Sequence record: NC_048016.1
Strand: one strand, 5' to 3'
DNA length: 64,000 nucleotides
Shown: positions 5,246 to 29,375 of the stretch, piece after piece
Position numbering within the stretch: the first letter of the stretch is position 1
How the letters are laid out: each line of letters starts with the position of its first letter
Notes under the pieces: generated by a model
Seen by the model: the letters and a program-made list of their open reading frames with translations, nothing else
What the model was told of the DNA's origin: nothing
Database searches by the model: none
Made by a program: the position numbers and the translations under genes

Positions 5246-5260
5246 TAGAGGCGTAACCGC

Positions 5261-6262: not shown

Positions 6263-6271
6263 GGAGCAGTC

Positions 6272-13429: not shown

Positions 13430-13463
13430 AATAAAAAGAAGAAAGGGTGCCCCGAAGGGCACC
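13430..13463 (-). terminator. rho-independent terminator ending the radical SAM operon
   Basis: On minus: GGTGCCC-TTCG-GGGCACC followed by a T-rich tract. Confidence 0.8.
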
Positions 13464-13467
13464 ACTG

Positions 13468-14109
13468 TTATTCTACCGACGGATTAAACTCCGCCGCGTC
13501 GAGTGAGGCGTAATCGCCCTGCTCCGCAAATGCACGGATACGGGTTTTGTACGCGGTCAACTGAACGTGCAGCTGTGCGTTACGTGCGACAATCAGAGAG
13601 TACAGCATCTCTGTGTCTTTCGCTTCCCACTCTTCCAGCGCTTGGTTATCGGCAGTCACCCAATACTCCGGCACGGTGTTCGTTTGCACGAAGCCGGCCA
13701 GGGTGGTCAGGGTCTCACCTGCGGTCTGGAACATGTGGTCTTTGTACGCAATGTCAGCCGTGACCGCTTCACCGTACGCTGCATTAGTGGCCTGAAGTTT
13801 CTTGGCCAGCAGAGTATAGCAATACGCTTTGGTCGACTGCAACTCTTTGAGGTAATCCTTCACCTGAATCCCCAACACGTCTTTGATAAACGTTTTGGTT
13901 TGGCGTAGGGTGTAGTTGGCTTCGAACTGGGTCTGCCCCTGCTCTTGCAACTGACGCAGTGCATCTTTCTCACTGAGTCCCTCTAAGAGTGCGTAGTGTA
14001 AACGCTTGGCCAGCGTGACATCGCCGTTGGGGTCAAAGAACAACCCGTTGCGGTCAATCTGGCCATCGCCGTTTTCAAACCGCGCTTTTATCTCGTCAGC
14101 ACTAAGCAT
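13468..14109 (-). CDS. DUF4376-like protein (tail-fibre associated)
   Basis: 213 aa; C-terminal HMFQT...YWVTADNQ...LY..IV.R...L...K.RI pattern resembles DUF4376. Confidence 0.6.
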   Translation of the reverse strand: MLSADEIKARFENGDGQIDRNGLFFDPNGDVTLAKRLHYALLEGLSEKDALRQLQEQGQTQFEANYTLRQTKTFIKDVLGIQVKDYLKELQSTKAYCYTLLAKKLQATNAAYGEAVTADIAYKDHMFQTAGETLTTLAGFVQTNTVPEYWVTADNQALEEWEAKDTEMLYSLIVARNAQLHVQLTAYKTRIRAFAEQGDYASLDAAEFNPSVE

Positions 14110-14636
14110 TCTTTCTCTCCCACGAATCCAACTTTGGTCAACATGTCATAGGACATGATTTCAAAGTCGATACGAAGATCCAGACGGTACTGCAAGTTCG
14201 GCAACGGCTGGTCATTTTCTTGGAACGCCTGCATGAACATCATGTCATCGAAGTAATGACACGCGCTCTCGGGGTTGCGCACCATCCAGACCGGGACATC
14301 CGGGAAGGACAGACACAGTGCCACCAGAGAATCACCGCCACGATCGATAGTGCCGGTACGCAGGATGTTTACCTTTGAAGCAGGGGCCGCCAGAATACGC
14401 GCTTCGAAACCCGGGTTACGCTTTTCGATTTCTGCTAACGAGTCGTGGCCGTTCTCCACGCACTGAATCGGCAGGACAACGTTAAGAGCAAAACGGTTAA
14501 TCAAACGCAGCCAGTGATCGTTGAAATCATCGGCAGGCACGATAGCGTGAATGTTAAACAGCTTATAATGCTGTAAGAACGCTTCGATTTTGCGACTATC
14601 GTACTTCGTAAAATTCTGGAGAAGCAGGCTTTTCAT
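14088..14636 (-). CDS. hypothetical protein in the radical SAM cassette
   Basis: 182 aa; overlaps both neighbours (41 and 22 nt). Confidence 0.6.
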   Translation of the reverse strand: MKSLLLQNFTKYDSRKIEAFLQHYKLFNIHAIVPADDFNDHWLRLINRFALNVVLPIQCVENGHDSLAEIEKRNPGFEARILAAPASKVNILRTGTIDRGGDSLVALCLSFPDVPVWMVRNPESACHYFDDMMFMQAFQENDQPLPNLQYRLDLRIDFEIMSYDMLTKVGFVGEKECLVLTR

Positions 14637-15993
14637 TCTTGAATTGTTCCTTGCGGTCAGTTTGTTCCACAGCCATGGTCATCTCACGGATGGCGGTGAC
14701 GTGTAAAGGCTGTTCTGCAGCTTCGCGGGTGAGTTTCTCTTCAACAGCAAAGTTGCGCTTCTGTTGGCACTGGTAACAGTTACAAACAGACTTGTCGTAC
14801 TGCGATTCGTACGACCCGAAACGTTGTTTCCACCACTGCGCCACTAAGAGCTTCGCGGTAGTCCAACCACACTGGCGACGTTCGCCGTGATACTCTTTAC
14901 GAGCGTCTTCTTCACCGTCGCCATTTTCATACGCCGCCGCCACGCACGAGGCACACAGGTGCTTCGCTGGGCAACCGATACACTGGTCAGGATACGACTT
15001 CCACTGTTCCTGAACTTCGGCCAGCAGTTTACCGCCGTCGGTGTTCACGATGGTTTGACCTTCGAGCTTACCGATGGCCTGACGGGTGGTTACCGTGGAC
15101 ATGAAGCGGTTACAACCGAAGATGTTACGGTCGAAGCCGAGACAAGTCATGTACACCGTGGTGCCGCAGTGCGGACGCAGACGTTGTGGGTCGTAGCGTA
15201 CAGAGTCATCATGGATGAGCTTCTCACGCCAGTCCGGGTTCCACAGTTGGTCAACATCCAGACCGTCCGGCAGCACGTGACCGATTTCAGAGTTCTGGTC
15301 TAAGTGCAGACCTTTCTCAATGAAATACTCCGCCACTTCGATGAACTGGTTGGCAATCTCGAGTGCCATCTGGCGCGGTAACACGTCTTCGAAAACGACG
15401 TTACCGTACAGACGACCGCCCCCGGTCACATCAATCAGCGACTTCATCCCAGCACCGTACTGCATCAGCGTTTCTTTCGTGAAGGTGGCTTTCACCCCAA
15501 TCTCACGAACACCGATTTCTTGCAGAAGCTTATAGCCGGCGACCGCTGCTTGGTAAGACCCTTGACGGGACGTGGTGAAGATACGGTACTTATCGTGGGT
15601 CTCGGGCAGACCATCGATAGAGACACCGATCGACAGGTAATCTTTCCAGCGATTCAGAATCTCCAGCGCCAGCGGTTTGTCAAACAACGTGCCGTTGGTG
15701 GAGATAGAGAACACGTAAGGCAGATTGTGCTTTTTGCACAGCTCTTCTGCGGTTTCGAAGGCCGCTTTCAGCAGCTTCGGCTGCATGAAGGGTTCGCCAC
15801 CGATGATATCGATGATGATACCGTCGATACCTTGGTTCTTCGAGAAGAAGCGATGTTTATCGCGATTAAAGCAGGCGTGAATAAAATCAACGACATCAGC
15901 GACTTTGTTATTACGCGGATACTTACGCTCGTAGCAATACTCACAGTCGAGGTTGCACGATAGGTTGGTGACTATCTGGTAGGTTGCATCCAT
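14596..15993 (-). CDS. radical SAM/SPASM-domain enzyme, probable CXXX-repeat peptide maturase
   Basis: 465 aa; CNLDCEYC (CxxxCxxC), IIGGEPF and STNG motifs; C-terminal Cys-rich SPASM-like region HCG...C...GCNRF...CIGCPAKHLCASC...CGW. Confidence 0.9.
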   Translation of the reverse strand: MDATYQIVTNLSCNLDCEYCYERKYPRNNKVADVVDFIHACFNRDKHRFFSKNQGIDGIIIDIIGGEPFMQPKLLKAAFETAEELCKKHNLPYVFSISTNGTLFDKPLALEILNRWKDYLSIGVSIDGLPETHDKYRIFTTSRQGSYQAAVAGYKLLQEIGVREIGVKATFTKETLMQYGAGMKSLIDVTGGGRLYGNVVFEDVLPRQMALEIANQFIEVAEYFIEKGLHLDQNSEIGHVLPDGLDVDQLWNPDWREKLIHDDSVRYDPQRLRPHCGTTVYMTCLGFDRNIFGCNRFMSTVTTRQAIGKLEGQTIVNTDGGKLLAEVQEQWKSYPDQCIGCPAKHLCASCVAAAYENGDGEEDARKEYHGERRQCGWTTAKLLVAQWWKQRFGSYESQYDKSVCNCYQCQQKRNFAVEEKLTREAAEQPLHVTAIREMTMAVEQTDRKEQFKNEKPASPEFYEVR

Positions 15994-16005: not shown

Positions 16006-16890
16006 TTATTTTTTAATTGGATTAAGCCAGTTCATGATGTAACGGTAGCCGTGCTCACCGATGGCCAGTGCAATCTTGTTGCAGCCACGGTCCACGACCA
16101 TCTCAACGTTCTCAGGAACTTGCAGGTCGCCATTCGGTTGACTGACGATAATTTCACTACAGGCATTACACGCATCTTCTTCGAAGAACTTCTCGAGCTT
16201 GATGATGGTGTCACGCTTGTTAATGCGGTTGAGCTTACGCATGTTGTCTTGCAGACGCTCAAAGCCGTACACGAAGTTTAACACGTGGTCAGGCGACAGC
16301 ACTTTCTTCATCTGGTTATCGAACAGGTAGTTCATGCCGAGGAAACCAAGATGGTGAATGGCGTCTTGCATTTTCATCATGCCTTCGTGCCAGCGCATGT
16401 CCCCGATCTTCTCACGGGTTAACACTGACCAGAGGATAACGTTGTCCAGCTGGGCGATGACTTCAAACGCTTCGGTATCACCGGAACGAGCAAAGTCCAT
16501 TAAACCACGGGCATCATCTTCGTAACCGTCGATGGAGACCACAACACGATGGAAGGTTTTCAAAAACTCGACTTGCTCTAAACGTAACTTACGTCCGTTT
16601 GTGAAAAGATAGTGCACGGCAGAAGGACGTTCTACGCGCATCATCTCGACCGACTCGACGAGTTTACGGTAAGACAGTAACGGCTCACCCCCCGTCCAGA
16701 TGATCTCTTCCACACCGGGATTCTTTTTCAGTAACTCCATCATTGCCTCTTCATGGGTTTTACGAGACACGTCCCCTTTGACCATGTGAATCTCACCCGC
16801 ACAAAACGAACAATTGAGGTTACACTTCGACGTCAATGCTACGTTAATGGTCTTTGCAGGTGAGTAAACATCTTTACTTAACGTTCTCAT
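16006..16890 (-). CDS. second radical SAM protein (short C-terminus)
   Basis: 294 aa; CNLNCSFC, WTGGEPLL, FTNG, VVSIDG; only a short CNAC...GC tail. Confidence 0.85.
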   Translation of the reverse strand: MRTLSKDVYSPAKTINVALTSKCNLNCSFCAGEIHMVKGDVSRKTHEEAMMELLKKNPGVEEIIWTGGEPLLSYRKLVESVEMMRVERPSAVHYLFTNGRKLRLEQVEFLKTFHRVVVSIDGYEDDARGLMDFARSGDTEAFEVIAQLDNVILWSVLTREKIGDMRWHEGMMKMQDAIHHLGFLGMNYLFDNQMKKVLSPDHVLNFVYGFERLQDNMRKLNRINKRDTIIKLEKFFEEDACNACSEIIVSQPNGDLQVPENVEMVVDRGCNKIALAIGEHGYRYIMNWLNPIKK

Positions 16891-17800
16891 CCGTCATTCC
16901 GTACAGGCGACGTTGGAAAGAGAACAGTGGGTCGGTGTCTCGTACATCTTCACCCGCCTTTAACAGACGTGGTGAGCGATACGCATCGTACAGTGCGTTA
17001 AGAACGGATTGACGCTCACCCATGCGGATAAGGTCGTCCAGTTCAACCGGGGACGAAATAAACGGTTCCAGCGCAGCCTGTTGTTCGTCGGTGAACTCTT
17101 TCAGCTGTGACTGGAGCAGGAAGCGAATCAGTTTGCGATCATCCGCCGTGGAGTTCGGGACAGCGCCAAACTCAGTCTGACAGAGATAGGCCATCCACGG
17201 TTTACGGATGCGGAGTGTTTGCGCATGCGGGTCTGCGATGTAGACCCACTCTTGCTTCTCTGCATCCCATGCAAACTTATAACTAAACGCGAGTAAGTCT
17301 GCCAAGCAGTCGATATTCGCGGCTTCAAGGCCAGAGAACGGGTGATACATTTCACGGTCTTTCTCCACGCTTCCAGTGCCGGCTTCCACCAGTTTGAATA
17401 AGTGGGACCAGCTTCCGCAGTAATCGCTGCTGTAGCTACGCACGCACACCGGACGCATGCCGAGTTCTTTAAAGGACTCGAACATCAGTTCCAGTGGTGC
17501 ACTATAGTTCAGTACCGAATCTGTGAAAAAATACTTGTCGTTGACAAGCTTCCCGGTAAAACCAGAACCGCCTAAGGCGAACTGAATGGATTTCACGTTC
17601 AGCTTGCCCACCGTGGTCGCATCAATCACGGTGTACTCTTTTTTCGTAAAGTTGCGACCGCGAAGCTTAGGCCATTCAAACTGGTCCATGGCAATCAGCC
17701 GCAGCTCGTCGTTGATGTGTGCGTTAACACTGTCCGGTGACGAGATGTGAATTGGGTAATTCATGCTCGTGCGGTACGCAAGATGATCGTTACTCTTCAT
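16874..17800 (-). CDS. hypothetical protein in the radical SAM cassette
   Basis: 308 aa; RBS AGGGGA; 17-nt overlap with radical SAM 2; no family recognised. Confidence 0.7.
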   Translation of the reverse strand: MKSNDHLAYRTSMNYPIHISSPDSVNAHINDELRLIAMDQFEWPKLRGRNFTKKEYTVIDATTVGKLNVKSIQFALGGSGFTGKLVNDKYFFTDSVLNYSAPLELMFESFKELGMRPVCVRSYSSDYCGSWSHLFKLVEAGTGSVEKDREMYHPFSGLEAANIDCLADLLAFSYKFAWDAEKQEWVYIADPHAQTLRIRKPWMAYLCQTEFGAVPNSTADDRKLIRFLLQSQLKEFTDEQQAALEPFISSPVELDDLIRMGERQSVLNALYDAYRSPRLLKAGEDVRDTDPLFSFQRRLYGMTDENVK

Positions 17801-17812
17801 TAGGTTCCCCTG

Positions 17813-18022
17813 TTAACTCGGGAAGGAGACTGATTTCGCACCGCCTGAGCTACTCCAGCTACAGGTTCCGCCGCAGTTGTACGCGCCAGCACGAATCCCA
17901 CCCAAGTTGTTGGTGTTGTTACACGTTCCACGGTTGGCGATATAATCAACCGCCTGTCCCGTGGTAATATAGCGTTCGATGCTCGCCACGCGGTTACCGA
18001 TGTCTTTCAAGCTTACTGCCAT
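17813..18022 (-). CDS. short precursor-like peptide (leader plus truncated Cys core)
   Basis: 69 aa; MAVSLK leader and CGGTCSWS motif homologous to the two long peptides; RBS AGGAG. Confidence 0.75.
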   Translation of the reverse strand: MAVSLKDIGNRVASIERYITTGQAVDYIANRGTCNNTNNLGGIRAGAYNCGGTCSWSSSGGAKSVSFPS

Positions 18023-18031
18023 AGCCTACTC

Positions 18032-18460
18032 CTACGGTCCAGAACAGCCTGCTCCACAACTCCCGCCACAGCCACTACCGCAACTTCCCGAGCACCCGCC
18101 AGAACATTTGCCTGAACAGTTACCCGAGCATGTGCCAGAACAACCGCCGGAGCAGCCGCCGCCACAGTTACCGCCACAGCTGCCACTACAACCACCGGTG
18201 CAGCTAGATGAACAGTTGCCCGAACAGGATGACGAACACCCAGACGAGCAGTTACCCGTACAGCCACCAGAACAGCCGTTACCGCACGTCCAGCTACAAG
18301 AGCCGTTACAGTGCAGTGCCGCTGGGGTGAAACCGTTGAGTAAATCAGCATTATTAGTAGTGCGTCCACCGATGTAGTTTTGCACGCCTGCTTCAGTTTT
18401 TAGTGCGGTGTTCTCAATATTGACAACACGGTCACGCACCGATTTTAATGAAATCGCCAT
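18032..18460 (-). CDS. CXXX-repeat Cys/Ser/Gly-rich precursor peptide (23 perfect repeats)
   Basis: 142 aa = 50-aa leader + 23 x C-X-X-X; RBS AGGAG. Confidence 0.9.
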   Translation of the reverse strand: MAISLKSVRDRVVNIENTALKTEAGVQNYIGGRTTNNADLLNGFTPAALHCNGSCSWTCGNGCSGGCTGNCSSGCSSSCSGNCSSSCTGGCSGSCGGNCGGGCSGGCSGTCSGNCSGKCSGGCSGSCGSGCGGSCGAGCSGP

Positions 18461-18468
18461 TTCCGCTC

Positions 18469-18858
18469 CTAAGGGCTGCTACAACCAGCACTGCAGTTAC
18501 TGCTACAGGTGCCAGAGCAACCGCTAGAGCAGCTGCTGCCACATGAACCTGAACAGCCGCTTGAACAGCCACCAGAACACGAGGATGAGCAACCTCCCCC
18601 GCAACCACCAGAACACGAGCCCGAACAGTTACCTGTACACACGCCGCTACAGCTTCCTGAGCAGCTCGAGCAACCGTGACTACAACCTGACGAACACGTC
18701 CAACTGCACGACCCGTTACAACGGGCCCACGTATCAGGTTGGCCTGCCAATAGATTCGCATTGTGAACTTTGCTGTTCACCTGCCCCTCTACGGACGCGC
18801 CGGTTGCTGCTTGGACTCGGTCAAGACGGGCACTTAGTTCTTTAAGTGATATCGCCAT
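18469..18858 (-). CDS. CXXX-repeat Cys/Ser/Gly-rich precursor peptide (21 Cys)
   Basis: 129 aa = 46-aa leader + 20 x CXXX + one CXX; RBS AAGGGAAGG. Confidence 0.9.
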   Translation of the reverse strand: MAISLKELSARLDRVQAATGASVEGQVNSKVHNANLLAGQPDTWARCNGSCSWTCSSGCSHGCSSCSGSCSGVCTGNCSGSCSGGCGGGCSSSCSGGCSSGCSGSCGSSCSSGCSGTCSSNCSAGCSSP

Positions 18859-18878: not shown

Positions 18879-18912
18879 ACACGGGCACTCGCCATATAGA
18901 CGAGGCCCGTGT
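18879..18912 (-). promoter_or_regulatory. stem-loop upstream of the precursor peptides
   Basis: ACACGGGC/GCCCGTGT plus CTCG/CGAG stem; loop contains TATG on the minus strand; only a weak U-tract. Confidence 0.45.
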
Positions 18913-18921
18913 GTAATTATA

Positions 18922-20121
18922 TTAACGTGAACCGGCATCAGCCTGTACATCGTCACGTGTGGTCAAGTTGGCGTTGACGTGCACGTTTGCCTGAACCACG
19001 CCGCCATACTGCTTGTGCAGGTACTGGGTGTGTGGATCGGCGGCAGACAGGTGGTTAGCGAGCGTCTGGTTAACACTGGCGATGTTGCCCTCGGTCGTGG
19101 TGACACGACGGGTCAGTGCGGTCAGGTCAACACGCAGCTGGTCAATCTGCTGCTGTGCGTCACCGGCTCCGGACTTGAGGTCATCAATCTGGTCTTGCAA
19201 CCCAACGGCCGTTTGCTTCAACTCATTCACGGTTTTCTGTAACGTCAATACCAGTGAATTGAGGTTGGCCACAATCAACGTCATCTTCTGGTAGTTTTGG
19301 TCTACCGTGTTCAGTTGGTCGTTGAAGGTGGTCAGCGAACTGACGATGGCATCAATGCGCCCACCCAGTGCCGTATCAGCAGCCTTAAGGTCGCCAATCT
19401 GGACGAGGGTTGCATCGATAGCTGCCTGCACGCCGGCAATCAACGCACGGATTTCGGTTGCGGTCAAACCATCAATATCGTGGATATCAAGGTTGTGCAC
19501 GTTACCCGTGGCATTGATGTGGGCATTCAGCGCGTCCAAGAAGTTATTCTTGATGTCGCCGATGATGTCTTTGATTTTCTCAAGCTGAACGGCATCGCCT
19601 GAACCAATCGCATCCAGAATACCCGAGAGCAGGGTAATGACGTATTCAAAACCAAAGATATCGCCAACGTCTTTAAACGCCGGGGCACCCGGTAGCGTAT
19701 CCGGGAAATCGATTAAGTCGGCAAAGTTCACCTTCTTATTATCAATGCCCAGAATCGCAATCGCATTTTCAATCGCAGTCACGTTCGCAGACATTGGCCC
19801 ACCGACAACCTGAGCGGTCACGATGATGTCTGTTGGAATGCTGCTGTTGGTCACTACAACTGCCATCACGACTTCTTTGTTGCCCGAGAGCTTCATGTAG
19901 GCCGGATGAGCGAAAATCAGTTCGTAGTCGGTACCACGTTTATACGGCGTGGTGGGCGAGTTCGTGGCACGCAGTTTAAAACTGTCTGCGTAAAACGGAC
20001 CTGCCGGAAAAGCAAAAGACCGGTTAACTTTACCGGAACCCAAGACCACGGGGATACTTACCGCGTTCGATGTCAGAGTTCCTTTAAGGTCAAGCGGATA
20101 CTGGAAAATAATATCACTCAT
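18922..20121 (-). CDS. coiled-coil tail-fibre-like virion protein
   Basis: About 399 aa from MSDIIF; N-terminal GPFY...DYELIF domain shared with the giant fibres; long heptad region; NHLSAADPHTQY fibre motif. Confidence 0.7.
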   Translation of the reverse strand: MSDIIFQYPLDLKGTLTSNAVSIPVVLGSGKVNRSFAFPAGPFYADSFKLRATNSPTTPYKRGTDYELIFAHPAYMKLSGNKEVVMAVVVTNSSIPTDIIVTAQVVGGPMSANVTAIENAIAILGIDNKKVNFADLIDFPDTLPGAPAFKDVGDIFGFEYVITLLSGILDAIGSGDAVQLEKIKDIIGDIKNNFLDALNAHINATGNVHNLDIHDIDGLTATEIRALIAGVQAAIDATLVQIGDLKAADTALGGRIDAIVSSLTTFNDQLNTVDQNYQKMTLIVANLNSLVLTLQKTVNELKQTAVGLQDQIDDLKSGAGDAQQQIDQLRVDLTALTRRVTTTEGNIASVNQTLANHLSAADPHTQYLHKQYGGVVQANVHVNANLTTRDDVQADAGSR

Positions 20122-20165
20122 CTCCAAGCTCCCTTACGAGAGGGCATCCCTGCCCTCACCAGTGG

Positions 20166-23100
20166 TTAAGACGACAAATTACTCGTTGGGATTAACATAA
20201 GATTGATGGTTACCTCACCCAGCGTGACCATCTTTCCGTCAGGCCCGAAGAACTTCGAGGCGACAACGACTTCCCGGTTCGACCCATTCGCGCGCTCCAA
20301 GAACGGCGGACAGTAGCTGATTTCCGGAGCCACCACACTCACCACCCCTGTGGTGTCTGCCACCGGAACATAGACATGGGAGACGGTCTCCAACACGTTG
20401 AGGTTACCGGACTGCGTACCTTGGTCTGAGGTGAATGCCACCACCGACGTCCCACTCGAGCGGATTAACTCGCGTTGGGTTGTCCCATTCCAATCGTAGG
20501 CAATAAAAGCAATGTGGCAGATGGTCCCACCGGCGGTACCTGCCTGAATGACTTCGATCCCAACCGTGTGCTGCCCGTTAGACACCGGGAAGTCCTGGGT
20601 GGCGAGCGCGTTTGACCCTTTCGAGGTAATGCCGGATGCCACACGCACGCCATCAATGTAGACGTGACACATGTCATCCACCGCAAACTTAAGTCGCAGC
20701 GTGCCCCCGGTGGTGGTCACTTTGAACTTGGTCGCATACGTACCGTAGCCCGGAATCGTCCGTGGGTTGATGTCAATCCAGATAAGCCCCAACGCATTTG
20801 CATCCGGGTTCTCCGCTGCTGTCACGGCCACTGCACGGGCAGGAGCCCAGAACAGCTCAGGCAACACTGCCCCGGAATACCACGGCTGGGAAGCCGGGAC
20901 ATAACGGTTAATCAGCGGACGAGACAACAATGATCCCACCGCCAGTGACAGTGCGGACTGACCCACGTACCCATCACCCGAGGTCGCAATCGGTAACGGT
21001 TCCAGCAGACCGAGCGGTGACTCTGCCCGTTCACGCACCACGTTCGAGCCGTGGCTGTACGCAACCCCCTCATGCTCCTCTAACTGACGTACCGCCCCCA
21101 GACGTTTCACCGGGGTAATGTTCTCCTCGATGATACGGCTGCTGTCGGTCTTGACGTAACCCACGTAAAGCAGGTTACTGCTGTCAGGGTAACGTTCGGT
21201 ACTGACCCGGTACCGCGCCTTCGTGGTGCCTTCGTCTGGGTAGACTTCAGCGTGGAAATAGAAGGTCTGGTTTCGGTAGTCACTGAACGCCGACGAGAAG
21301 TCAATGCTGTACTGGTCGAGCACGTACTCTTTCGAGTTAATGAACAGTCGCTCTGACTCGGTCAGGTAAAGAATCCACCCTTCCGCCGTCTTCACGCCCG
21401 CCAACACCACCGGTTGCGCATTCGCCGGGGAACCAAACGGACTGGCCATGAAGTCCGCAATCGGATACGCGTCGCCTGAGGAGAACACCGGGTCCAGTTT
21501 GAAATACGAATTCACCATCGCATTCAAATCTTTCACCCACACCCACGTGTTTGGGCTGTACGTTGGTCGGTCAAGCCCCAGTGCCCCGGTGGAGCTGGTC
21601 CACTGGTTACCGGTCAGGGTCAACACCGCACGGAAGTTCAATGCACCCCCATTCCCGACTTGGGCGATACGCAGCACGGACGGCAGATAGAGCACAAACT
21701 TCTGCCCATCGTTGGACACGAGTTGCGGCTGACCAAAGCGGCGGTCTTTTCCACCAAAGCTGAAATCCAATCCGACGTTGGCGATGTTCAAGTCAAGGTC
21801 GTTCTGGAACGTCAACAGTTGGAGGGTGCTGGAGCTAAACGCGAGAATCCCGTTGGAAACCGACGGGTACATCACAAAGTAGTAATGGTCGATTTTATTC
21901 ACACCGTCTACAAAGCGTTGTGCCGTGGCCTGTCCCAAGAAGAGCTGCTGCGGTGTCCCAATCGCAAAGCCCCACAGTGCGACATACAGTTTCCCGATTT
22001 GGTCAGCGGCCATCAGTCGCTCGGATGCGTAGCCGTTCGCTGCACCCGCTGGGGCGTTAGCCAACATGATACTGCGGACTTTCGCCCACTCGGTATCGTT
22101 CAGCGTCAGTTTGTCGGCGGTAAAGTTCGGGTTCCCGGTCACGTTCTTGTACTGCACCGTTTCAGGCTTAGTAAAGAAGCACCCGTTCAGCGTGCCTTTA
22201 TCTGCCGCATTCACTTTCACCATCGCCAGCTGGGACATCGCAGCGTAGGTTGCCGTGGTGATAACACGCCGGTTGTTGGTTGGACCAAAGCCCCCGTAAC
22301 CCGGTACGTCGTAATCCGTGTCGGTTGAATACAACACCTCAACGCACAACGCATCCTTGGTACCGGTGAGCCAGATGGCTTTAGAGTCCCCACCGAAGAA
22401 CAGCGGGTAGGCCATGCCAGAGGCGTACACAGACCCACGTCCTTGGTCGAGTTTGGTGGTGTTACCCACAACCGCACCTGTCGTCACATCGGCTGACAAC
22501 GAGTCGTAATGGTCACCCCCGCCCGGAACACCCATCGTGACTATCTGCACCGGGACATCACTGTCATTACCAACCGAAAGCACAGCGACCTTGTCATCGT
22601 GGTGTGCCACAAAGGCACGCTGGTTGGCTTGGGTCCCTGTCCACTTCAGTGGGTAGTTCGTGGTCAACAAATCCACGCCGGTTTTGTACTTCGCACCGGT
22701 ATCCAGTAACTGCAGTGGGAAGATTTCCGGGTGCTCCAGTGTCACCGTCAGGGTATCGAAGTCGAGCGTGAATGTCGTGTACCAGTTCTTGAAGCTCAAT
22801 GACTCGGTTGCTTTCGCCAGCCAAATCGTTGGCGTCATTGCCACCCGTAACACTTCATCCTCTTGCCCCAACACCCGGTTACACGTTGGCCCGTGCACCA
22901 GATTGCGCCCTACCGTGAAGGTACTGAGTGCGGCTGGGCTGATGTACGCTACCCGGTCGGTCTCGGTGTTGGCGGTGTCGTACCCCCCTTCGGCACGGAG
23001 CAGTAACCACGAACCTGCCACGCCCTTCATCCCGTTCAAGGTTTCAAGGGTAAAGGCCACGTCTTGTGCGCCGATGCTATTGAGTGAAACCGACGCCAAG

Positions 23101-25253
23101 GCCACACGGTAACTGTCGTTCGCCAGTCGGGTGCGCAGCAGATACACTTTACTGCCGTAGACCACGAGGTCATCCGTTTCCCCGGCGGGCACCATTGCCG
23201 CATTACTGCCTGCCACATCCATGATGGTCGGGAACGTCACTCGCACCACATTCAGGTGGCGATTGTGGTCGGCTGTCCCGGCGAGGTCAACGAGGTAATA
23301 CGCCCCGTCGCTGCCTAAACAGATAAGGGCATCCTGCCCCGGCACCACCACTGCACTGAGTGTCACCCCCGGGTACTTGGTGGTCATCCCGGCTGGCTGA
23401 TAGCGCTGTGAAGTTTGTTGGACGTTGCTGAGCGTGTTGTCGTCGTTAAAGGTACCGTAAGCGTAATAGATGTGGCGATCAGTCAGACCGTCCGTTCCGT
23501 TACGCAGAATATACAACCGGTCCCCTTCAAAACGCATCGCCCCGTAGAACTGGCTGTTGTTCTTGCCATACCCTTCGTAGTTACCCTGTGCCGGGATAGG
23601 CAGGAACCCGAGGTTGCCGTACGACGCCCCAATAACCGCCCACGTTGGAATCAGACCGTTGGCTTTGCTTTCCAAATCCGCCAAAGTCTTCTCAAAGAGA
23701 TACCCCTGTTTAGCCGTCACCACACGGTCTGTGCTGGCATCGATAATATCCCAGAGTAACACCAAGCCGGCTGCCGAAGAGCTGGCGTAGGGTACGTTGG
23801 TCACGTCTGCGAGGGTATGGGTGTGGTTGGTCAGGGATTTGTTGGCCACGGCGGCGGTTAACGCTTTGGTTACCGGCTTATCAAGCGGTGCGGTGTTCTG
23901 CATCTTCTCGACACCGACGTCCGCAGGCGTCAGGGTTAAGGTCTGGTCTGCATCAAAACCTTTGCCGTTGACGGTGTAAGTGTCATCGACGTAGTTCCCC
24001 AGCAAATCCCGCATCGCGGTAATACCCGCCTGTGAAATTGCATAACCGTCACTGAGTGAGGTACGGTTGGACGTGACCTTGATCAGACCCCGCACCCCCA
24101 CTGAGGCTTCGGGCAGGTTCGCTTCCAGACGGAACGGGGCGTAGGACTTGCCTGACCCGTAGACCTTCACGGTTTCCGTAGAGGACATGTACGCGTTAGC
24201 TGCTTTGAGTTTCACCTCGTGCAGGTACATCTCCACCATGTCGGGTGTAATCAAATACACCCCGTTGAAGACCGGAGCCAATGCATCAGGGCCCGAGTGC
24301 ACCATTAAGGTGTTCAGCCCCGCTGACATCTCCACCGCCACACCCGGGTTCGTGTTCGCACTGTCTGCGGTGAACCGTAAAGTCTTTTTGGTGGAGACCA
24401 ACACGTTCGGCCCTTTGAAGGTGATAACGTGGTCGTTGTTGGCGGTGGTGTACGTCAGGACATTGTTGTTGAGAACACGCAAGCGACCGAACACGTCATT
24501 AAACGCGGTGTCGTTACGCATCAGCAAATCAACGTGCTTTTGCTGCAAACCGGTTGTGGCCATCAGGGTCACGAGCTGGTCAATGGTGCGACCAAATGCC
24601 CGGGTGGCGTCCACGGCTTTATCCGTGACCTTCAAGGCCCCGATGTCATCCGCAGTGTACGAATGCCCGTGGGACTTCAGCAGGTGGTGCTGATACATCC
24701 CATCGTCGAACACTTTCTTGCCGGTTTGATAGATGAGCTCAGTGACTTCACTGTACGCGGCATCCATGTCCCCTGCCCGCTTAATCAGGCCCAAACGAAT
24801 GTCATTTAACGCGGAGACAATCTCATCGCGGGCAATGGCTTCGTCCAAGTCCTGTGGCGGGTCGATAGCTGGAATGGTCGGCGCATAGCGCATCAACGCA
24901 GACCAGTCTTCGTTACGGGGGTCTTTCAGGTCACTGCTGACCAGCCATTTGCCAATCTCGCTCTGCGGTACGCGGTAATCACGCCCCACAGCGTAGATGC
25001 TGTATTTGATGGCATCGTGGTTCAGCAGCATTATCCCGCCAAACACCGCGGCTTGGAATGCCTCAGCGGCTTCTTTGTAATAGTAGCCGAGGTAATAGTC
25101 CATGCCCTCGATAAGCGGGACATCATTTAAATCGGTGATAACCAGCCCGGTGCGGTAGAAAGGGCCTTCCGGCGGAATAACCGTATTGAAACGGTTTGGG
25201 AACGTCGAGACTTTCAACGTGCCTTCAAACTGGGCCGGGGTTTCCGTCGCCAT
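20166..25253 (-). CDS. giant tail fibre / tail-associated virion protein
   Basis: 1695 aa; shared N-terminal domain, NTAPLDKPV...NHTHT fibre motifs, C-terminal beta-sandwich (PA14-like) segment. Confidence 0.75.
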   Translation of the reverse strand: MATETPAQFEGTLKVSTFPNRFNTVIPPEGPFYRTGLVITDLNDVPLIEGMDYYLGYYYKEAAEAFQAAVFGGIMLLNHDAIKYSIYAVGRDYRVPQSEIGKWLVSSDLKDPRNEDWSALMRYAPTIPAIDPPQDLDEAIARDEIVSALNDIRLGLIKRAGDMDAAYSEVTELIYQTGKKVFDDGMYQHHLLKSHGHSYTADDIGALKVTDKAVDATRAFGRTIDQLVTLMATTGLQQKHVDLLMRNDTAFNDVFGRLRVLNNNVLTYTTANNDHVITFKGPNVLVSTKKTLRFTADSANTNPGVAVEMSAGLNTLMVHSGPDALAPVFNGVYLITPDMVEMYLHEVKLKAANAYMSSTETVKVYGSGKSYAPFRLEANLPEASVGVRGLIKVTSNRTSLSDGYAISQAGITAMRDLLGNYVDDTYTVNGKGFDADQTLTLTPADVGVEKMQNTAPLDKPVTKALTAAVANKSLTNHTHTLADVTNVPYASSSAAGLVLLWDIIDASTDRVVTAKQGYLFEKTLADLESKANGLIPTWAVIGASYGNLGFLPIPAQGNYEGYGKNNSQFYGAMRFEGDRLYILRNGTDGLTDRHIYYAYGTFNDDNTLSNVQQTSQRYQPAGMTTKYPGVTLSAVVVPGQDALICLGSDGAYYLVDLAGTADHNRHLNVVRVTFPTIMDVAGSNAAMVPAGETDDLVVYGSKVYLLRTRLANDSYRVALASVSLNSIGAQDVAFTLETLNGMKGVAGSWLLLRAEGGYDTANTETDRVAYISPAALSTFTVGRNLVHGPTCNRVLGQEDEVLRVAMTPTIWLAKATESLSFKNWYTTFTLDFDTLTVTLEHPEIFPLQLLDTGAKYKTGVDLLTTNYPLKWTGTQANQRAFVAHHDDKVAVLSVGNDSDVPVQIVTMGVPGGGDHYDSLSADVTTGAVVGNTTKLDQGRGSVYASGMAYPLFFGGDSKAIWLTGTKDALCVEVLYSTDTDYDVPGYGGFGPTNNRRVITTATYAAMSQLAMVKVNAADKGTLNGCFFTKPETVQYKNVTGNPNFTADKLTLNDTEWAKVRSIMLANAPAGAANGYASERLMAADQIGKLYVALWGFAIGTPQQLFLGQATAQRFVDGVNKIDHYYFVMYPSVSNGILAFSSSTLQLLTFQNDLDLNIANVGLDFSFGGKDRRFGQPQLVSNDGQKFVLYLPSVLRIAQVGNGGALNFRAVLTLTGNQWTSSTGALGLDRPTYSPNTWVWVKDLNAMVNSYFKLDPVFSSGDAYPIADFMASPFGSPANAQPVVLAGVKTAEGWILYLTESERLFINSKEYVLDQYSIDFSSAFSDYRNQTFYFHAEVYPDEGTTKARYRVSTERYPDSSNLLYVGYVKTDSSRIIEENITPVKRLGAVRQLEEHEGVAYSHGSNVVRERAESPLGLLEPLPIATSGDGYVGQSALSLAVGSLLSRPLINRYVPASQPWYSGAVLPELFWAPARAVAVTAAENPDANALGLIWIDINPRTIPGYGTYATKFKVTTTGGTLRLKFAVDDMCHVYIDGVRVASGITSKGSNALATQDFPVSNGQHTVGIEVIQAGTAGGTICHIAFIAYDWNGTTQRELIRSSGTSVVAFTSDQGTQSGNLNVLETVSHVYVPVADTTGVVSVVAPEISYCPPFLERANGSNREVVVASKFFGPDGKMVTLGEVTINLMLIPTSNLSS

Positions 25254-25285
25254 GTGTAAACTCCCACTTCTTAAAGAAAACGGAA

Positions 25286-25331
25286 GCCGTCCCCCGAGAG
25301 GGACGGCGCTTACGGACGGGTTGTCCGTAAG
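25286..25331. other. two adjacent GC-rich hairpins without a U-tract
   Basis: GCCGTCCC/GGGACGGC (25286-25307) and CTTACGGAC/GTCCGTAAG (25309-25331). Confidence 0.55.
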
Positions 25332-25340
25332 GACTTCCCG

Positions 25341-28300
25341 TTAGTTCCAAACACCGAGGTCGGTGCTGACCCCTTCTTCTGTTCGCATGATGCCCGTGAC
25401 CCAGTCCCACATTGCGGTGGTCAGGTTAAACGGATGGTATTTGCACAGGAAGAGGGTTGGGGCAGTGTCTTCCATCACCACAACCGCAGCATCGTCATTA
25501 AAGTCGATGGTGCCCACAGTCTGTGCCCCGCTCTTAAAGATAAGTGTGGACTCTAAGAAGAACGGGCTGGCAATGGCCAGTGGGACAAACTCAATGTACA
25601 ACAAATCACCGGCAAAGCCTGTGACCGTTGGCGTCAAACGACTGCTTGCCACGGCCCCGTTCTGCGGGCTGTTGTTGTGCACCGATTTCCCATTGACATA
25701 ACTGCGGAAGTTGTAATTGGCGTTTACCGTCCAATCCAGCGCATCGAAGTCCGCAGGGGCTTCCACGACCAAGGCAAAGCGTCGGCTGTACGCAGCGCCC
25801 CGATAAGGGTTGGCTGTGCTTGACCAGACTTTCGCCCGGGTAATCTCGGCACCCACACGCTGTTTCGACAGGATACGATCCGGATGTGCTACCAACGGAC
25901 TGTACTTACTGCGGGACGGCATAACCGCATTACCGGCAGTGGGCAGTCCGATAAACTCCGTTGCCCCCGACAGTGCTGCCCAGTTTGCAGGTATCCCACC
26001 ACTGAGTAACTTCTGAACCACTCCACGACCATTCCCCTGTACCGCGTAATCGTTGGCACGGGTGTAGGCTTCAAAGAGGCTACGGAAGTAACTGTAGTTG
26101 TGGTAATCGGCAGACGGGTAGATACCGGCATGCAGGATATGCTGACTTGTGGAGGCCAGCTCCTTACGGTTAAAGCCCACAAAGCCATTCATGCAATCCC
26201 GAACATCAAACGGCAGTTCGTACGTAACTTTGCGAATAATCGGTGTTGACCGGTTGTCCTCAAACCGCACCAGTTCCACACGCAAGGTGTTGGTCTTCGG
26301 TACGTAGCGGTAACGCACGATATAACGCGACGCTCCTGTCTCCTTGACTTCCTCACCCCAAACACTCGGGTCAGTTGCCTCCACCAAACTCATGTCGTAC
26401 GGGTGCACATCGAACGGCGTAACCGCCGGTGCTGCACGGTTAGCACTGTTGGCAGCGTTTACGGGCAACTCCGGCATGTACCCATATTCGGCCTCATTGG
26501 TGAACACGTTGATGTGGAAGAATTTGTGCTGACCGTTACGCGCTTTCTGTGCAAAGGTCAGCCACAAGTCCAACTGGGTGTTACCCAGCACACGACGAAT
26601 CGGAATATACAGCGCCAGTGAGCCCTCGTACGTGAGCAGGTTGTTCTCATACGGGTTCGCCGGGGTCATCCACTGCTGCGGACCACTGTACCGGGTATCC
26701 ATCCACATCGTCAGGGGGCCGGTACCGTCAACCGTCGGTTTGAGTGTGAGCACACTCGCTGCGAGGTTTGCTGTACCCGCCACACCCGCCACAATGTAGT
26801 CAGGTTTGTCGGAGGCAATGGGCAGACGTTTCATCCCCGGGTTATCCGAGAGATACCAGTCACTCGACTCAGGGACATGTGCCGGAATCAGATTCTGGTG
26901 CGTACCCATCTCTTGGAACTGACCAAAGTCTGCCACCGTGTCAAACTCAACCGTTGTCGTGGTCATTCCTGCCGGACCACAATCCACATACCCGACGTAG
27001 GTCTGGGTAATGCTGATGTCGTTGGAGGCAATCGGTTCAGCACGACCAAACAGTGAATTGGTGCTCATGTTGAGATACACAAAGTGGCGATTGTTACGCG
27101 GGTTGATAAACTCGCTTAACTGGGCCAGCTTCGTATCAGGCGATGATGCCACGATAGGATAGTTGTTATCCCAAATCTCAAATGCCAATGCTGCCGGTTT
27201 GGTGCTGTCGTTGCAATCCGCCCGTAAGGCGACCGTGTGCACCGGGGATGCCGTATCCACATCAAATACCCCGTCAACCGTCGGCGCACCGGAAGTCACG
27301 AGGGTGCCGTTGATGTAAACACTGATGTTTCCCCCGGCCGAGGCGATCACCCTCAGACGGCCTGAGGAGCACGCTACGCGCTCTTTAGCCAGAACTGAGA
27401 TAATGGACAGATCGCCCTGCTGCGAGGCGCTGAGGCCGATTGTGCGTGCGTATAAAGGAAGTGTGGTGGCACTGGAGGTTAAGGCCAACTGCGTATTGTG
27501 CAGAACACCCTTTGCCCAGTTACGCTCGATGACATTCGTCGGCTGGTACCAGTTGAACATCGGGGTGGTTTCCAAGTTCACTGACCCGGTTACCCGGCCT
27601 TCTTTGCGACCACCGTTGGCCATGTAGAAGTATTTCAAGTCCTGCACTGACAACGCCAGCTTGGAACTCGCTACCGACCACGTTGCCCCGCCAATCACCG
27701 CATAGTCCGTCACGGCTTTGGGGTTGGCCCCTTTGAGGTTCTCTGCCACGGCTGCCAGTTGCAGCTGCAGTTGATACAACACATTGGGTGCCACACCCCG
27801 ACCGTCTGCCAGCGAGGCTTCGGTTGGCGCAATACGAATCACCCCAAGGTCGGCTTCAGTAGCATTCGGGATATTGAGGGAGGCCCACGCATGTTTGTGG
27901 CCTTTGTCAGACTTGCCCGCGAGTGCGGTTTGCAAATCACCTGACAACGGTTTGTCCACATCCGCGGTGTTGTCCGCATCCCCTAACCCGATATCCGCTT
28001 TACTGAGGACACGGGCACCGTCGTCCATGGCCACCGAGTTCAGTCGGGTCGCTTTCGGGACGAACTGCCCAAGCGTCGTATCGTACGCTGCCACTGCACC
28101 CGGGGTGACTGCTTGTCCGGTTGCCACATCGCTCTTCGCAGTCACCAATGTCACCGCGCCGTCGGTTGTGGTCGTGGCATCCGGCAGGGTGACGTTCCAT
28201 TTCACCGGGTCGGCTTTAGAGCCTTTCCCACTCGGGGTCAAGCCTTGCGTTTCAGACTGGACGTAAAGCTTGGAGTCATCCGGGTCAGTTCCGCCCCCGT

Positions 28301-29375
28301 CATCTTCGGCTTGGTAGTCCATCAGCGTAGTGGTGGTCAGTAGGGTTACCCCATTCACCGAGAGCTTATCCATGCCGAGTGCGTTGCCTGAAGACTCGAT
28401 ACGCATGACGTTCGAACCCGCGACCCATTCGAAATACGCCACATCGCCTTTATAGCCTGCCCGCAGTGCAATCCCACCCGTGGTGGTCAGGTCAAAGCCG
28501 GTGTCCGTAAAGAGCACGCTGGACGCCCCGTTCTTGGATTTAAAGAGTGGACGGTTGGCCTGTACCAACTGCACAAACGTACCTTGGATGTCTTTAAACG
28601 CCCACGTCTCGATATACTTGTCGATATCGGACTGCTGCAAACCCAGTGCCCGAATCTCTGCGGTTAACTCCCGCAGGGTTTTCCCGTAGGCGAGGAAGGT
28701 ATCCGCCGCTTTCAGGGAAATCGGGTGTGCCCCCATTTGGGTGACATTGGTTCCGTGGGGGTTTTTGGCATTGACGTGTGACGGATAATCGAAGGCTTCA
28801 ATCTCTGTGTGCAGACTTTCGACGGTGACTTTCAGCTGGTCAAGTTTGGCTTTGATTTGATCGTTGGCCGAACCGGCATCGAGTTCCACGTCATGAATCG
28901 CAGACGCCACGTACTTCTTGTTCAGCAGGTCATGCCACGAGGTGGCTGCCGGCATCACGGGATACAAAGAAGGGCGGTTGTCCACATTCAGCCAGCGTGC
29001 ACTGGTTGGGTTGTTCAAATACTTCACTAACGTGTCGAAGGATTCCAACAGTCCGTCGTAATACGTCCCGCCCAAGTGCTGACCGGTGAAAATCAGTGAG
29101 CCCTTGATGGCCGGGTTAATCACGTTAACCCCGCAGAACACCGGACTGGCCACTGAGTCGTCCAGCTCTGTCAGCTGATAAGCCAACTCGTAATCGACGC
29201 CCTGAGTCAGAGGGTTAGAGGCAGTTGCCTGCCTCACGGAAAACCCAGACTGGAAGAACGGACGGTGCTGGAGTACCAGCACACGTTCCGAGGCGATGTC
29301 CGATTCGAGAATACGCTCCTCAGTAAACTGATTGGTCTTGGCGGTGCCTTTCCAATCGTAAGGAATCGCACTCAT
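25341..29375 (-). CDS. giant tail fibre / tail-associated virion protein
   Basis: 1344 aa; RPFF...DYELAY N-domain, NTADVDKPLS..HKH motif, two beta-sandwich-like segments. Confidence 0.75.
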   Translation of the reverse strand: MSAIPYDWKGTAKTNQFTEERILESDIASERVLVLQHRPFFQSGFSVRQATASNPLTQGVDYELAYQLTELDDSVASPVFCGVNVINPAIKGSLIFTGQHLGGTYYDGLLESFDTLVKYLNNPTSARWLNVDNRPSLYPVMPAATSWHDLLNKKYVASAIHDVELDAGSANDQIKAKLDQLKVTVESLHTEIEAFDYPSHVNAKNPHGTNVTQMGAHPISLKAADTFLAYGKTLRELTAEIRALGLQQSDIDKYIETWAFKDIQGTFVQLVQANRPLFKSKNGASSVLFTDTGFDLTTTGGIALRAGYKGDVAYFEWVAGSNVMRIESSGNALGMDKLSVNGVTLLTTTTLMDYQAEDDGGGTDPDDSKLYVQSETQGLTPSGKGSKADPVKWNVTLPDATTTTDGAVTLVTAKSDVATGQAVTPGAVAAYDTTLGQFVPKATRLNSVAMDDGARVLSKADIGLGDADNTADVDKPLSGDLQTALAGKSDKGHKHAWASLNIPNATEADLGVIRIAPTEASLADGRGVAPNVLYQLQLQLAAVAENLKGANPKAVTDYAVIGGATWSVASSKLALSVQDLKYFYMANGGRKEGRVTGSVNLETTPMFNWYQPTNVIERNWAKGVLHNTQLALTSSATTLPLYARTIGLSASQQGDLSIISVLAKERVACSSGRLRVIASAGGNISVYINGTLVTSGAPTVDGVFDVDTASPVHTVALRADCNDSTKPAALAFEIWDNNYPIVASSPDTKLAQLSEFINPRNNRHFVYLNMSTNSLFGRAEPIASNDISITQTYVGYVDCGPAGMTTTTVEFDTVADFGQFQEMGTHQNLIPAHVPESSDWYLSDNPGMKRLPIASDKPDYIVAGVAGTANLAASVLTLKPTVDGTGPLTMWMDTRYSGPQQWMTPANPYENNLLTYEGSLALYIPIRRVLGNTQLDLWLTFAQKARNGQHKFFHINVFTNEAEYGYMPELPVNAANSANRAAPAVTPFDVHPYDMSLVEATDPSVWGEEVKETGASRYIVRYRYVPKTNTLRVELVRFEDNRSTPIIRKVTYELPFDVRDCMNGFVGFNRKELASTSQHILHAGIYPSADYHNYSYFRSLFEAYTRANDYAVQGNGRGVVQKLLSGGIPANWAALSGATEFIGLPTAGNAVMPSRSKYSPLVAHPDRILSKQRVGAEITRAKVWSSTANPYRGAAYSRRFALVVEAPADFDALDWTVNANYNFRSYVNGKSVHNNSPQNGAVASSRLTPTVTGFAGDLLYIEFVPLAIASPFFLESTLIFKSGAQTVGTIDFNDDAAVVVMEDTAPTLFLCKYHPFNLTTAMWDWVTGIMRTEEGVSTDLGVWN

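Follow-up and report, generated by a model that had tools for sequence, protein, structure and literature searches.

We analysed a cluster of cysteine-ladder genes in the Erwinia jumbo phage Wellington (NC_048016), contained in a stretch of 64,000 nucleotides (nt) of that record, hereafter the window, in which each position equals the record position minus 124000. Peptide A (18469..18858, minus strand) has 129 amino acids (aa), made up of a 46-aa leader and a 21-Cys core that comprises 20 CXXX units and one CXX unit and ends in CSSP; the gaps between its successive Cys residues follow the pattern 33332333333333333333. Peptide B (18032..18460, minus) has 142 aa, a 50-aa leader being followed by 23 uninterrupted CXXX units ending in CSGP, with each of the 22 Cys-to-Cys gaps exactly 3 residues long. 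An earlier note on this DNA had described a 142-aa and a 129-aa peptide of this build. The coordinates, strand and composition of both were recovered as it gave them, as were the start CNGSCSWTC, which opens both cores, and the shared C-S-[GS]-P end. Beyond that finding, we identified a third paralogue, peptide C (17813..18022, minus), a product of 69 aa with an A/B-like leader, a C-G-G-T-C-S-W junction and a truncated core holding only 2 Cys. The three genes are spaced 8-9 nt apart, and the TAG stop of each upstream gene (e.g. peptide A) overlaps the TAGGAG Shine-Dalgarno sequence of the next (e.g. B). All three products share a conserved N-terminal segment of ~46-50 aa, which ends at the junction N-x-A-x-x-L-x-G-(6)-C-x-G-x-C-S-W.

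The consensus unit of the ladder is C-S-G-[G/S/T], with neighbouring Cys parted by two or three tiny residues. C, S, G, T, N and A make up almost the whole of the cores, from which D and E are absent; no charged or hydrophobic face is presented. Cys accounts for 25% of the cores, compared with 1.06% in the other long open reading frames (ORFs) of the window, and the chance of finding 23 Cys on a period-4 lattice within 92 positions is ~1e-21. This periodicity is a property of the protein and not a DNA repeat. Tandem Repeats Finder reported a single 12-nt array of 2.8 copies in the ladder DNA, and at the DNA level the repeat units are 60-72% identical. Both TGT and TGC are used for Cys, all six codons for Ser and all four for Gly, in keeping with the earlier view that codons so heterogeneous do not reflect a recent expansion. 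The codon periodicity also generates shadow ORFs at 17979-18377 (+), 18509-18679 (+) and 18013-18369 (-), among them a Pro/Glu/Gln-rich one of 132 aa on the opposite strand and Val/Ala-rich ones in other frames. All of these are artefacts, by which gene callers are probably misled.

Orthologues were compared across 15 complete loci, namely 13 IMG/VR loci of the same phage group together with pEa_SNUABM_11 and CR5. The ladder genes were intact and in frame in every one of them. The ratio of non-synonymous to synonymous divergence (dN/dS) of the cores was 0.00-0.10 across comparisons (0.04-0.07 for peptide A and 0.04-0.06 for peptide B), at near-saturated synonymous divergence (dS 0.5 to >2). 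Start codons and AGGAG Shine-Dalgarno sites are conserved, and leaders and Cys counts are kept across phages whose maturases are ~60% identical to those of Wellington. The cores are thus under strong purifying selection, as had been proposed when the Cys ladder was said to be preserved by selection. The opposite picture, in which repeats near-identical at the DNA level are accompanied by frame-disrupted relatives, was not seen; the units had diverged to the extent given above and no complete locus had lost its frame.

Low core dN/dS at high dS, together with the intact frame of all 15 loci, settles which reading frame is correct. Therefore, RefSeq gp183 (18432-18761, minus) is a wrong-frame call laid over peptide A, which is itself unannotated. 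RefSeq gp182 (18032-18439, minus) follows the frame of peptide B and starts 7 codons late. The same problem affects other members of the group, in that SPN3US gp166 is a wrong-frame ORF over peptide B, the SPN3US peptide A is unannotated, and CR5_157 is an ORF on the strand opposite the ladder gene; the spans of these errors outside Wellington are L004 4570-4905 and L003 10574-10786. The true SPN3US peptides are encoded at 5094-5486, 5497-5901 and 5917-6123 of L012. Neither peptide A nor peptide B, whether of Wellington or of SPN3US, had its exact sequence in a collection of ~15 billion proteins, in which peptide C was present. Since the ladder genes have been missed or mis-framed and their sequences are absent from that collection, proteomic and comparative studies are blind to these peptides. 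A reading in which the ORFs are untranslated, and owe their periodicity to a DNA-level feature or to a gene such as gp183 that uses another frame, could draw on the RefSeq annotation over peptide A and on the long ORFs that the codon periodicity produces in several frames on both strands. It is effectively refuted by the low dN/dS in the ladder frame at saturated dS, by the starts, AGGAG sites, leaders and Cys counts conserved across phages, and by matches of the peptides to the families TIGR04114 and phrog_6085, described below.

What is conserved in the ladder is the number of Cys and not the strict period. Peptide A has 21 Cys in 15/15 loci, and its first five gaps are invariably 33332. For peptide B the count varies, being 23 in the Wellington clade, 21 for CR5 and 20 in the others, whilst peptide C has 2 or 4 core Cys, with SPN3US-type relatives having 4. 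A single 7-residue gap occurs in peptide B of the SPN3US type; all other gaps in A and B are 2 or 3 residues. CXX units are mixed with CXXX units outside the Wellington clade, to which the strict period of 4 is peculiar. The earlier note had put forward a strict 4-residue period, and this stands for peptide B and the Wellington clade but not for the relatives, in which spacing drifts between 2 and 3 while the count is kept. Repeat-number variation among relatives, which the note had named as a check, is seen in peptides B and C. As a separate observation, the peptide A core (18469-18720) has a dS of 0.99 between Wellington and its closest relative (L008 versus L009), ~2-3 times that of its neighbours. 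In the same comparison neighbouring genes gave 0.22-0.61, and the peptide B core was ordinary at 0.48. The raised value might stem from gene conversion between units or from DNA repeats being selected against.

We then asked to which family the peptides belong. CXXX-repeat systems are described by the models TIGR04114 and TIGR04117 for the target, TIGR04115 for the maturase, TIGR04119 for a second maturase, TIGR04116 for a small protein, and PF27846. Peptides B and A scored 24.4 and 23.7 bits, respectively, against TIGR04114, the NCBIfam repeat model for CXXX-repeat radical S-adenosylmethionine (radical SAM) targets, and thus lie above its curated cut-off of 20 bits; peptide C gave no match to this model. 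All three match phrog_6085, a family of unknown function (E = 7e-28 for A, 5e-35 for B and 7e-25 for C), and they match no other PHROG and no Pfam family. A search of 5.8 billion protein clusters returned a few phage peptides first and then many PF27846 proteins, some of which carry the name 'Cys-Xaa-Xaa-Xaa repeat radical SAM target protein'. In its Bacteroidales members a twin-arginine-type leader precedes a core that opens with LDCNGSCSWGC, so that the core-start motif C-x-G-x-C-S-W is common to phage (CNGSCSWTC) and Bacteroidales (CNGSCSWGC) proteins. The full-length target model TIGR04117 did not match the phage peptides, and the twin-arginine motif (SRRxFFK in the canonical members sampled) is missing from the phage leaders. 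For reference, the Bacteroidales peptide P0106 matches TIGR04117 with E = 1.5e-12 and 47.5 bits, the model cut-off being 50. At a canonical Bacteroidales locus (L005) the target peptide is accompanied by a TIGR04115 radical SAM/SPASM maturase (625 bits), TIGR04119, TIGR04116, TatA and TatC. The CXXX-repeat radical SAM target system was defined bioinformatically and appears to be experimentally uncharacterised; we found no paper on the chemistry or function of the family. The A/B/C system probably encodes radical SAM-modified CXXX targets. We also observed that the Bacteroidales Tat-type CXXX locus (L005-L007, 1-6800) abuts an integrase, a P22_portal-like gene and a gene for a 1639-aa LPD23 protein, and the bacterial system may itself ride on a mobile element.

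The genes downstream are co-oriented with those of the peptides and partly overlap. Among them are two radical SAM enzymes. The larger, a candidate main maturase of 465 aa (14596..15993, minus), is a radical SAM/SPASM enzyme whose best NCBIfam model is TIGR04115. It has CX3CX2C at residues 13/17/20 and an extra CxCxxC at 404-409, and its SPASM-region Cys (276, 284, 294, 338, 341, 347, 350 and 375), a full auxiliary-cluster set, are invariant in 12 orthologues. It is 24% identical to the canonical Bacteroidales TIGR04115 enzyme (E = 4e-20). The nearest solved structure is CteB (5WGG/5WHY, E = 1e-9); residues 12-176 of the phage enzyme align with 106-264 of CteB, and the N-terminal region of CteB that forms the recognition element (RRE) for peptides synthesised on the ribosome and then modified post-translationally (RiPPs) is lacking. 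The smaller enzyme, of 294 aa (16006..16890, minus), matches PF04055 with E = 1e-14. Its CX3CX2C motif is at 23/27/30, and its invariant C-terminal Cys 241, 244 and 270 look like a twitch-type auxiliary site. SkfB (6EFN, E = 8e-6) is its nearest solved structure. A paralogue of this 294-aa enzyme, 303 aa long and with the same CX3CX2C motif and C-terminal Cys, is encoded by a third radical SAM gene between A and B in two metagenomic SPN3US-like phages (L013 4542-5453 and L020 4543-5454).

Three further proteins complete the string. A 308-aa protein (16874..17800, minus; phrog_8030, function unassigned) co-occurs with the cassette throughout the phage group and was found in 62 phage records; the 3' end of its gene overlaps the next gene by 17 nt. 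It has no Pfam, NCBIfam or PDB sequence match, and its AlphaFold2 model (predicted local distance difference test (pLDDT) 85, predicted template modelling score 0.82) has no significant structural neighbour, the best Foldseek match in the PDB being at E = 0.55. A 182-aa protein (14088..14636, minus; phrog_7988), whose gene overlaps the 3' end of the SPASM gene by 41 nt, is modelled as an alpha/beta partial barrel (pLDDT 82). Its likeness to radical SAM/TIM-like cores is weak and non-significant (QueE E = 7e-3, CteB E = 2e-2), and it has no CX3CX2C motif. The last gene of the string encodes a 213-aa protein (13468..14109, minus; phrog_8169), the SPN3US orthologue of which carries DUF4376. Counterparts of known accessory proteins were sought amongst these. 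BLASTP against the L005 TIGR04119 protein ruled out the 308-aa protein as its counterpart (E = 0.95) and gave no support for the 294-aa enzyme in that role (E = 0.03 over 14 residues). The 182-aa protein as an RRE is likewise unsupported, its fold being the partial barrel described above. Scans of Pfam, NCBIfam and PHROG found no protease, exporter or immunity gene in the cassette.

The presence of these enzymes bears on whether the ladder might simply bind metal. A metallothionein-like metal or Fe-S Cys wire, either built into the tail structurally or acting as a store or donor of metal for the Fe-S clusters of the adjacent enzymes, would suit cores that are one quarter Cys, otherwise small in residue and almost devoid of aromatics. 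The bacterial relatives are moreover Tat-exported, as is typical of cofactor-loaded proteins, and metal ladders do occur in phage fibres, the T4 gp37 fibre tip carrying a His-Fe ladder. However, the CC and CXC arrangements by which metallothioneins or ferredoxins are recognised are absent, there is no Pfam match, and the family is curated as a target of radical SAM modification. Two dedicated radical SAM enzymes are conserved in every locus, and these speak against a simple metal binder, which would need none. We therefore regard the metal wire as improbable. Metallothioneins, the antifreeze beta-helix and the T4 gp37 ladder resemble the phage cores in Cys-rich, small-residue make-up or in having a regular ladder of ligands or cross-links, but none shares a sequence or family match with them and none is known to be tied to radical SAM enzymes.

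The phage cassette can be set beside the canonical CXXX-repeat radical SAM target system. The two are alike in the period-4 Cys ladder with small residues, in the C-x-G-x-C-S-W start and in an adjacent SPASM radical SAM enzyme whose best family is TIGR04115. They differ in that the phage leader lacks the twin-arginine motif and forms a separate, rare family, that the phage maturase scores far below the TIGR04115 cut-off, and that TIGR04119, TIGR04116 and TatA/C have no equivalents. Instead, the phage has a twitch-like second radical SAM enzyme and three orphan proteins, and its three paralogous targets sit in the tail-fibre gene string of a lytic jumbo phage.

This string runs, in order, from the fibre genes through a 401-aa protein, peptides A, B and C, the orphan 308-aa protein, the radical SAM and radical SAM/SPASM enzymes and two small genes to a terminator. 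The 401-aa protein, gp184 (18922..20127, minus; phrog_2163), is encoded directly upstream of the peptides and is a fibre-like, coiled-coil virion protein with coiled-coil-type Pfam matches. It is a homologue of SPN3US gp167, and the annotations given to its homologues include viral fiber, short tail fiber and minor tail protein. Before it lie two giant genes (20166..29375, minus), whose products of 1695 aa and 1344 aa are homologous to the SPN3US 'baseplate/tail fiber candidates' gp168/gp169. At the other end, a strong bidirectional hairpin resembling an intrinsic terminator (13446..13463; 7-bp stem with 6 GC pairs, then CTTTCTTCTT on the minus strand) closes the co-oriented string just before the gene for a GH108 endolysin. 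Between the 401-aa gene and peptide A is a stable RNA hairpin (18879..18912, minus; centroid stem -25.8 kcal/mol, z = -2.9), which has no U-tract and may serve either to terminate transcription in part or to stabilise the transcript.

Gene order in the cassette was identical in 13/13 IMG/VR loci. The cassette was found in 62-67 cultured phage genomes, from phages of Erwinia, Salmonella, Cronobacter, E. coli and Proteus, and it follows the tail-fibre genes in all SPN3US-like jumbo phages. Recent horizontal acquisition was considered and is unsupported, with a cassette GC content of 0.521 against 0.526 for the window. In virion proteomics of SPN3US, gp167-173 were detected and gp161-166 were not; gp167, one of those detected, had no assignment to the head (PMC5694885 Suppl. 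Table 1). The former set comprises the flanking fibre proteins, and the latter the mis-framed ORF together with the enzymes and accessory proteins. That the enzymes and accessory proteins are missing from virions whilst the fibre proteins are present fits assembly factors acting on a structural product. That the published virion lists lack A and B is uninformative, because the SPN3US annotation does not include the true peptides and a search against it would have missed them. With regard to the 401-aa protein itself, jumbo phages at a greater distance (Goslar, Ralstonia RSL2/RSF1/RP12, Serratia 2050HW/Moabite and others) share only its N-terminal ~180-260 residues. Full-length versions that extend through the coiled-coil C-terminal part are found in essentially the enterobacterial clade that has the ladder cassette. 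Two Vibrio phages match 89% of the protein at ~30% identity and are not among the radical SAM hits.

Ladders of this kind were also found well outside the SPN3US-like group. A profile of the 58-residue leader and junction, searched exhaustively against 1.84 billion representative proteins, gave only 28 matches, mostly small peptides of the same kind. Two large, multi-stretch matches (P0228 and P0236) look like unrelated repeat proteins and were treated as compositional. In P0097, P0233 and P0235, differing globular N-terminal domains precede the shared junction (...ND[AS]xxL[GA]G.....HYDC.GGCSWTC) and a ladder. Of these, P0097 and P0233 match phrog_5073, 'tail fiber protein', through the N-domain with E ~1e-5. 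The P0097 gene lies between a collagen-like gene and a radical SAM gene, and that of P0235 (L029) directly follows a lambda-J-type central tail fibre gene and precedes a short radical SAM gene. Two divergent jumbo-phage lineages (L027 and L034) have complete cassettes with a C-terminally extended peptide C (P0224 and P0213, respectively), in which a 4-Cys mini-ladder is followed by a beta-rich C-terminal domain of 80-145 aa. Given the N-domain fusions and the extended peptide C, a ladder can lie inside a larger protein as one of its modules. Neither the C-terminal domains of P0213/P0224 nor the N-domains of P0235/P0207 showed similarity to tail-fibre genes among the compared sequences, and ladder proteins of the P0207 type had no match in cultured phages and one uncultured record only.

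A search with peptide B widened the family further. Ladders were present in 119 of the 120 matches listed, which fall into 13 groups by their N-terminal region, and the largest group among them (70 proteins) has a conserved ~105-aa domain followed by 14-34 Cys, 87% of the gaps being 3 residues. The genomic contexts sampled for these relatives were all phage-like. In L031 the order is tape measure, Dit, Tal-like and further virion genes, then the ladder, two small ORFs, a radical SAM gene scoring 389 bits to TIGR04115, which is above the cut-off of 350, and an integrase. L033 has a ladder protein, a 95-aa ORF, a radical SAM enzyme that also exceeds this cut-off (367 bits) and Amidase_3, and L032 a ladder protein, two ORFs and a radical SAM enzyme at 295 bits. 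L025 (768-6199) encodes a 327-aa protein that ends in a CXXX ladder (NPNGSCSRTCQVSCQKPCMLSCQSC...) and has three radical SAM genes around it; the ladder gene overlaps an upstream gene for a 459-aa radical SAM/SPASM enzyme and is followed by an HNH endonuclease gene and two more radical SAM paralogues. What looks like a second kind of phage Cys-ladder module was found in a temperate phage (L021/L022), where baseplate/fibre-like genes are followed by two ladder peptides, a PapB-like radical SAM enzyme, an amidase and an integrase. These two peptides (L021 4075-4543, L022 7477-7942) have 68-80 aa, 17-18 Cys and a CXXC ladder. The modules outside the jumbo phages (L029, L031-L033, L021/L022 and L025) thus resemble that of Wellington in having a ladder beside a radical SAM gene, at the distal end of the tail module or beside lysis genes, and differ in their N-domains (~105 aa, or tail-fibre-like in P0097 and P0233), in having a single radical SAM enzyme and, for L021/L022, in the CXXC as opposed to CXXX spacing. 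One gut contig stands apart, the 129-kb human-gut contig L030, which encodes a 247-aa ladder protein (P0114) and has no radical SAM gene called within 7 kb. Called genes on it (e.g. 4911-6644) contain several in-frame stops under table 11, and the phage therefore probably uses a reassigned stop codon.

A ladder with an adjacent radical SAM gene hence recurs in at least six unrelated phage contexts, from which it may be argued that the ladder is the substrate. The same recurrence bears on a rod held by disulfides only, comparable to the Cys-ladder beta-helix of insect antifreeze proteins, which would form after release while the radical SAM enzymes acted on some other substrate. Regularly placed Cys amongst tiny residues would allow such a rod, virions are extracellular so that disulfides are possible, and the near-equal Cys counts of A and B (21 versus 20-23) permit in-register pairing. 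However, peptide A has an odd number of Cys in all phages, and the peptides match the radical SAM target family and its core-start motif. With the repeated pairing of ladder and radical SAM genes added to these, a disulfide-only rod seems even less probable than the metal wire.

Taken together, we somewhat favour a combined reading in which the cassette is a phage variant of the CXXX-repeat radical SAM target system, with products that would be cross-linked, most likely by thioethers, and linked to the tail. We infer both the chemistry and the location in the virion. Modification by radical SAM enzymes through thioethers is suggested by family membership and by the nearest characterised relatives; a tail role is suggested, less strongly, by the position of the genes, by the recurrence of ladders beside tail genes, by the tail-fibre-like and C-terminal fusions, and by the lack of protease and exporter genes and the featureless small-residue composition. 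The two enzymes would engage the peptides through the leader or junction and then work along the ladder, joining the thiols to neighbouring small residues as intramolecular, sactionine- or ranthionine-like thioether cross-links. This would yield a rigid rod that consists of many small rings and resists protease and redox change. Rather than being cleaved and secreted, the product might, on weaker grounds, remain a protein built into or decorating the tail-fibre/baseplate apparatus, with the N-terminal segment doubling as an enzyme-recognition element and as an attachment or oligomerisation element. On a more speculative view, the homologous N-terminal segments of peptides A, B and C might hold the three together, and the near-equal Cys counts of A and B suggest that these two could run in register.

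Three chemistries had been offered for the ladder in the earlier note, a poly-thioether chain, a disulfide-stitched solenoid and a metal or Fe-S wire. The first is now favoured by the TIGR04114 match, the two adjacent radical SAM enzymes and their CteB and SkfB relatives, the other two being less probable. CteB and SkfB, maturases of SCIFF peptides and sactipeptides, are the nearest solved relatives and both make thioethers from Cys sulphur to carbon; they differ from the phage enzymes in that similarity is mainly in the radical SAM core, that the phage SPASM enzyme has no N-terminal RRE region and that the substrates are unrelated. Freyrasin, a ranthipeptide made by PapB, has repeated CX3D motifs, each closed by a Cys-to-Asp thioether. 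The phage ladders are similar to PapB ranthipeptides in that regular Cys would form small rings, and hence a ladder of thioether macrocycles, and the PapB model is the second best for the 465-aa enzyme. They are dissimilar in having no Asp/Glu acceptors, in an enzyme score far below the model cut-off and in ladders 3-4 times longer.

A classical RiPP is the most serious competitor to this combined reading. The leaders would be cut by a host or other protease, and the cross-linked cores released at lysis to take effect beyond the virion, such as by inhibiting rival bacteria or phages or by serving as a signal. A precursor-like leader and repetitive core next to radical SAM/SPASM maturases are what such a system would look like, and the bacterial relatives are exported by means of a Tat-type signal and dedicated TatA/TatC genes. 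The cassette is also just upstream of the endolysin in Wellington, lysis genes are similarly placed in L021 and L033, and the position is typical of cargo genes. Nevertheless, the cassette has no protease, exporter or immunity gene, and cores of almost nothing but C, S, G, T, N and A offer no charged or hydrophobic face. Globular C-domains on peptide C homologues and tail-fibre-like N-domains on other ladders disfavour obligatory release, and the module is universal and syntenic in the tail-fibre gene string of lytic jumbo phages. For these reasons we consider a released RiPP unlikely, and retain the thioether-cross-linked, tail-linked variant of the CXXX system as the better account.

Several results weigh against this account. 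The 465-aa enzyme matches TIGR04115 over near its full length with only 113.8 bits, short of the cut-off of 350, and its score to the PapB model NF047865 is close to this at 107.7 bits (cut-off 340). Amongst the five accessory proteins there was no match to TIGR04119 or TIGR04116 at E <= 0.01, and hidden Markov model and fold searches of the cassette proteins returned no RRE/PqqD-like recognition domain. The thioether assignment draws on distant homology, and we place it near an even call, if slightly on the doubtful side. The tail-fibre/lysis interval is a classic site for cargo ('moron') genes, and position alone is consequently no proof of a structural role. Similarly, at least 100 aa precede the ladder in 84 of the 120 peptide B matches listed; as long N-terminal regions are common in the family, fusion to an N-domain is not in itself proof of a structural protein. 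Lastly, the metagenomic relatives P0093, P0096 and P0217 have a disrupted frame near the 3' end, although these disruptions could be assembly errors in low-complexity DNA. A tail-associated structural role for the peptides is plausible but falls somewhat short of being the expected outcome. The broader suggestion, that phages possess a so far overlooked class of structural element, radical SAM-cross-linked Cys-ladder rods, with RiPP-type machinery devoted to building or hardening part of the tail-fibre or adsorption apparatus, is put forward as speculative. Were it correct, the same principle would serve many unrelated, mostly uncultured phages.

Four aspects of these data are new. These are the phage variant itself, with its own leader family, three paralogous targets, a set of two radical SAM enzymes and orphan accessory proteins; the occurrence of this variant in the tail-fibre module of all SPN3US-like jumbo phages; the repeated association of paired ladder and radical SAM genes with phage tail modules; and the finding that current annotation for the most part overlooks the ladder genes. 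We found no literature on the phage variant, on a radical SAM cassette in jumbo phages or on a link between ladders, radical SAM enzymes and tails, and one cyanophage paper gives a generic radical SAM annotation. The cassette places a divergent branch of the CXXX family in tractable phages, for which SPN3US amber mutants, virion proteomics and cultured Erwinia phages are to hand. With three short substrates and two enzymes the chemistry is directly testable, and the role could be addressed by phage gene knock-outs. If the product does belong to the tail apparatus, this would be the first case of RiPP-like radical cross-linking in virion construction, and would account for the repeated pairs of Cys ladders and radical SAM enzymes beside tail genes in metagenomic phages. 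As a final observation on distribution, genes of SPN3US-type phages, those for peptide C and the radical SAM enzyme among them, are found on hundreds of ~240 kb contigs in assemblies of Salmonella and E. coli isolates, where they are labelled as bacterial. This suggests that SPN3US-type jumbo phages are frequently carried by, or co-sequenced with, clinical or food isolates.

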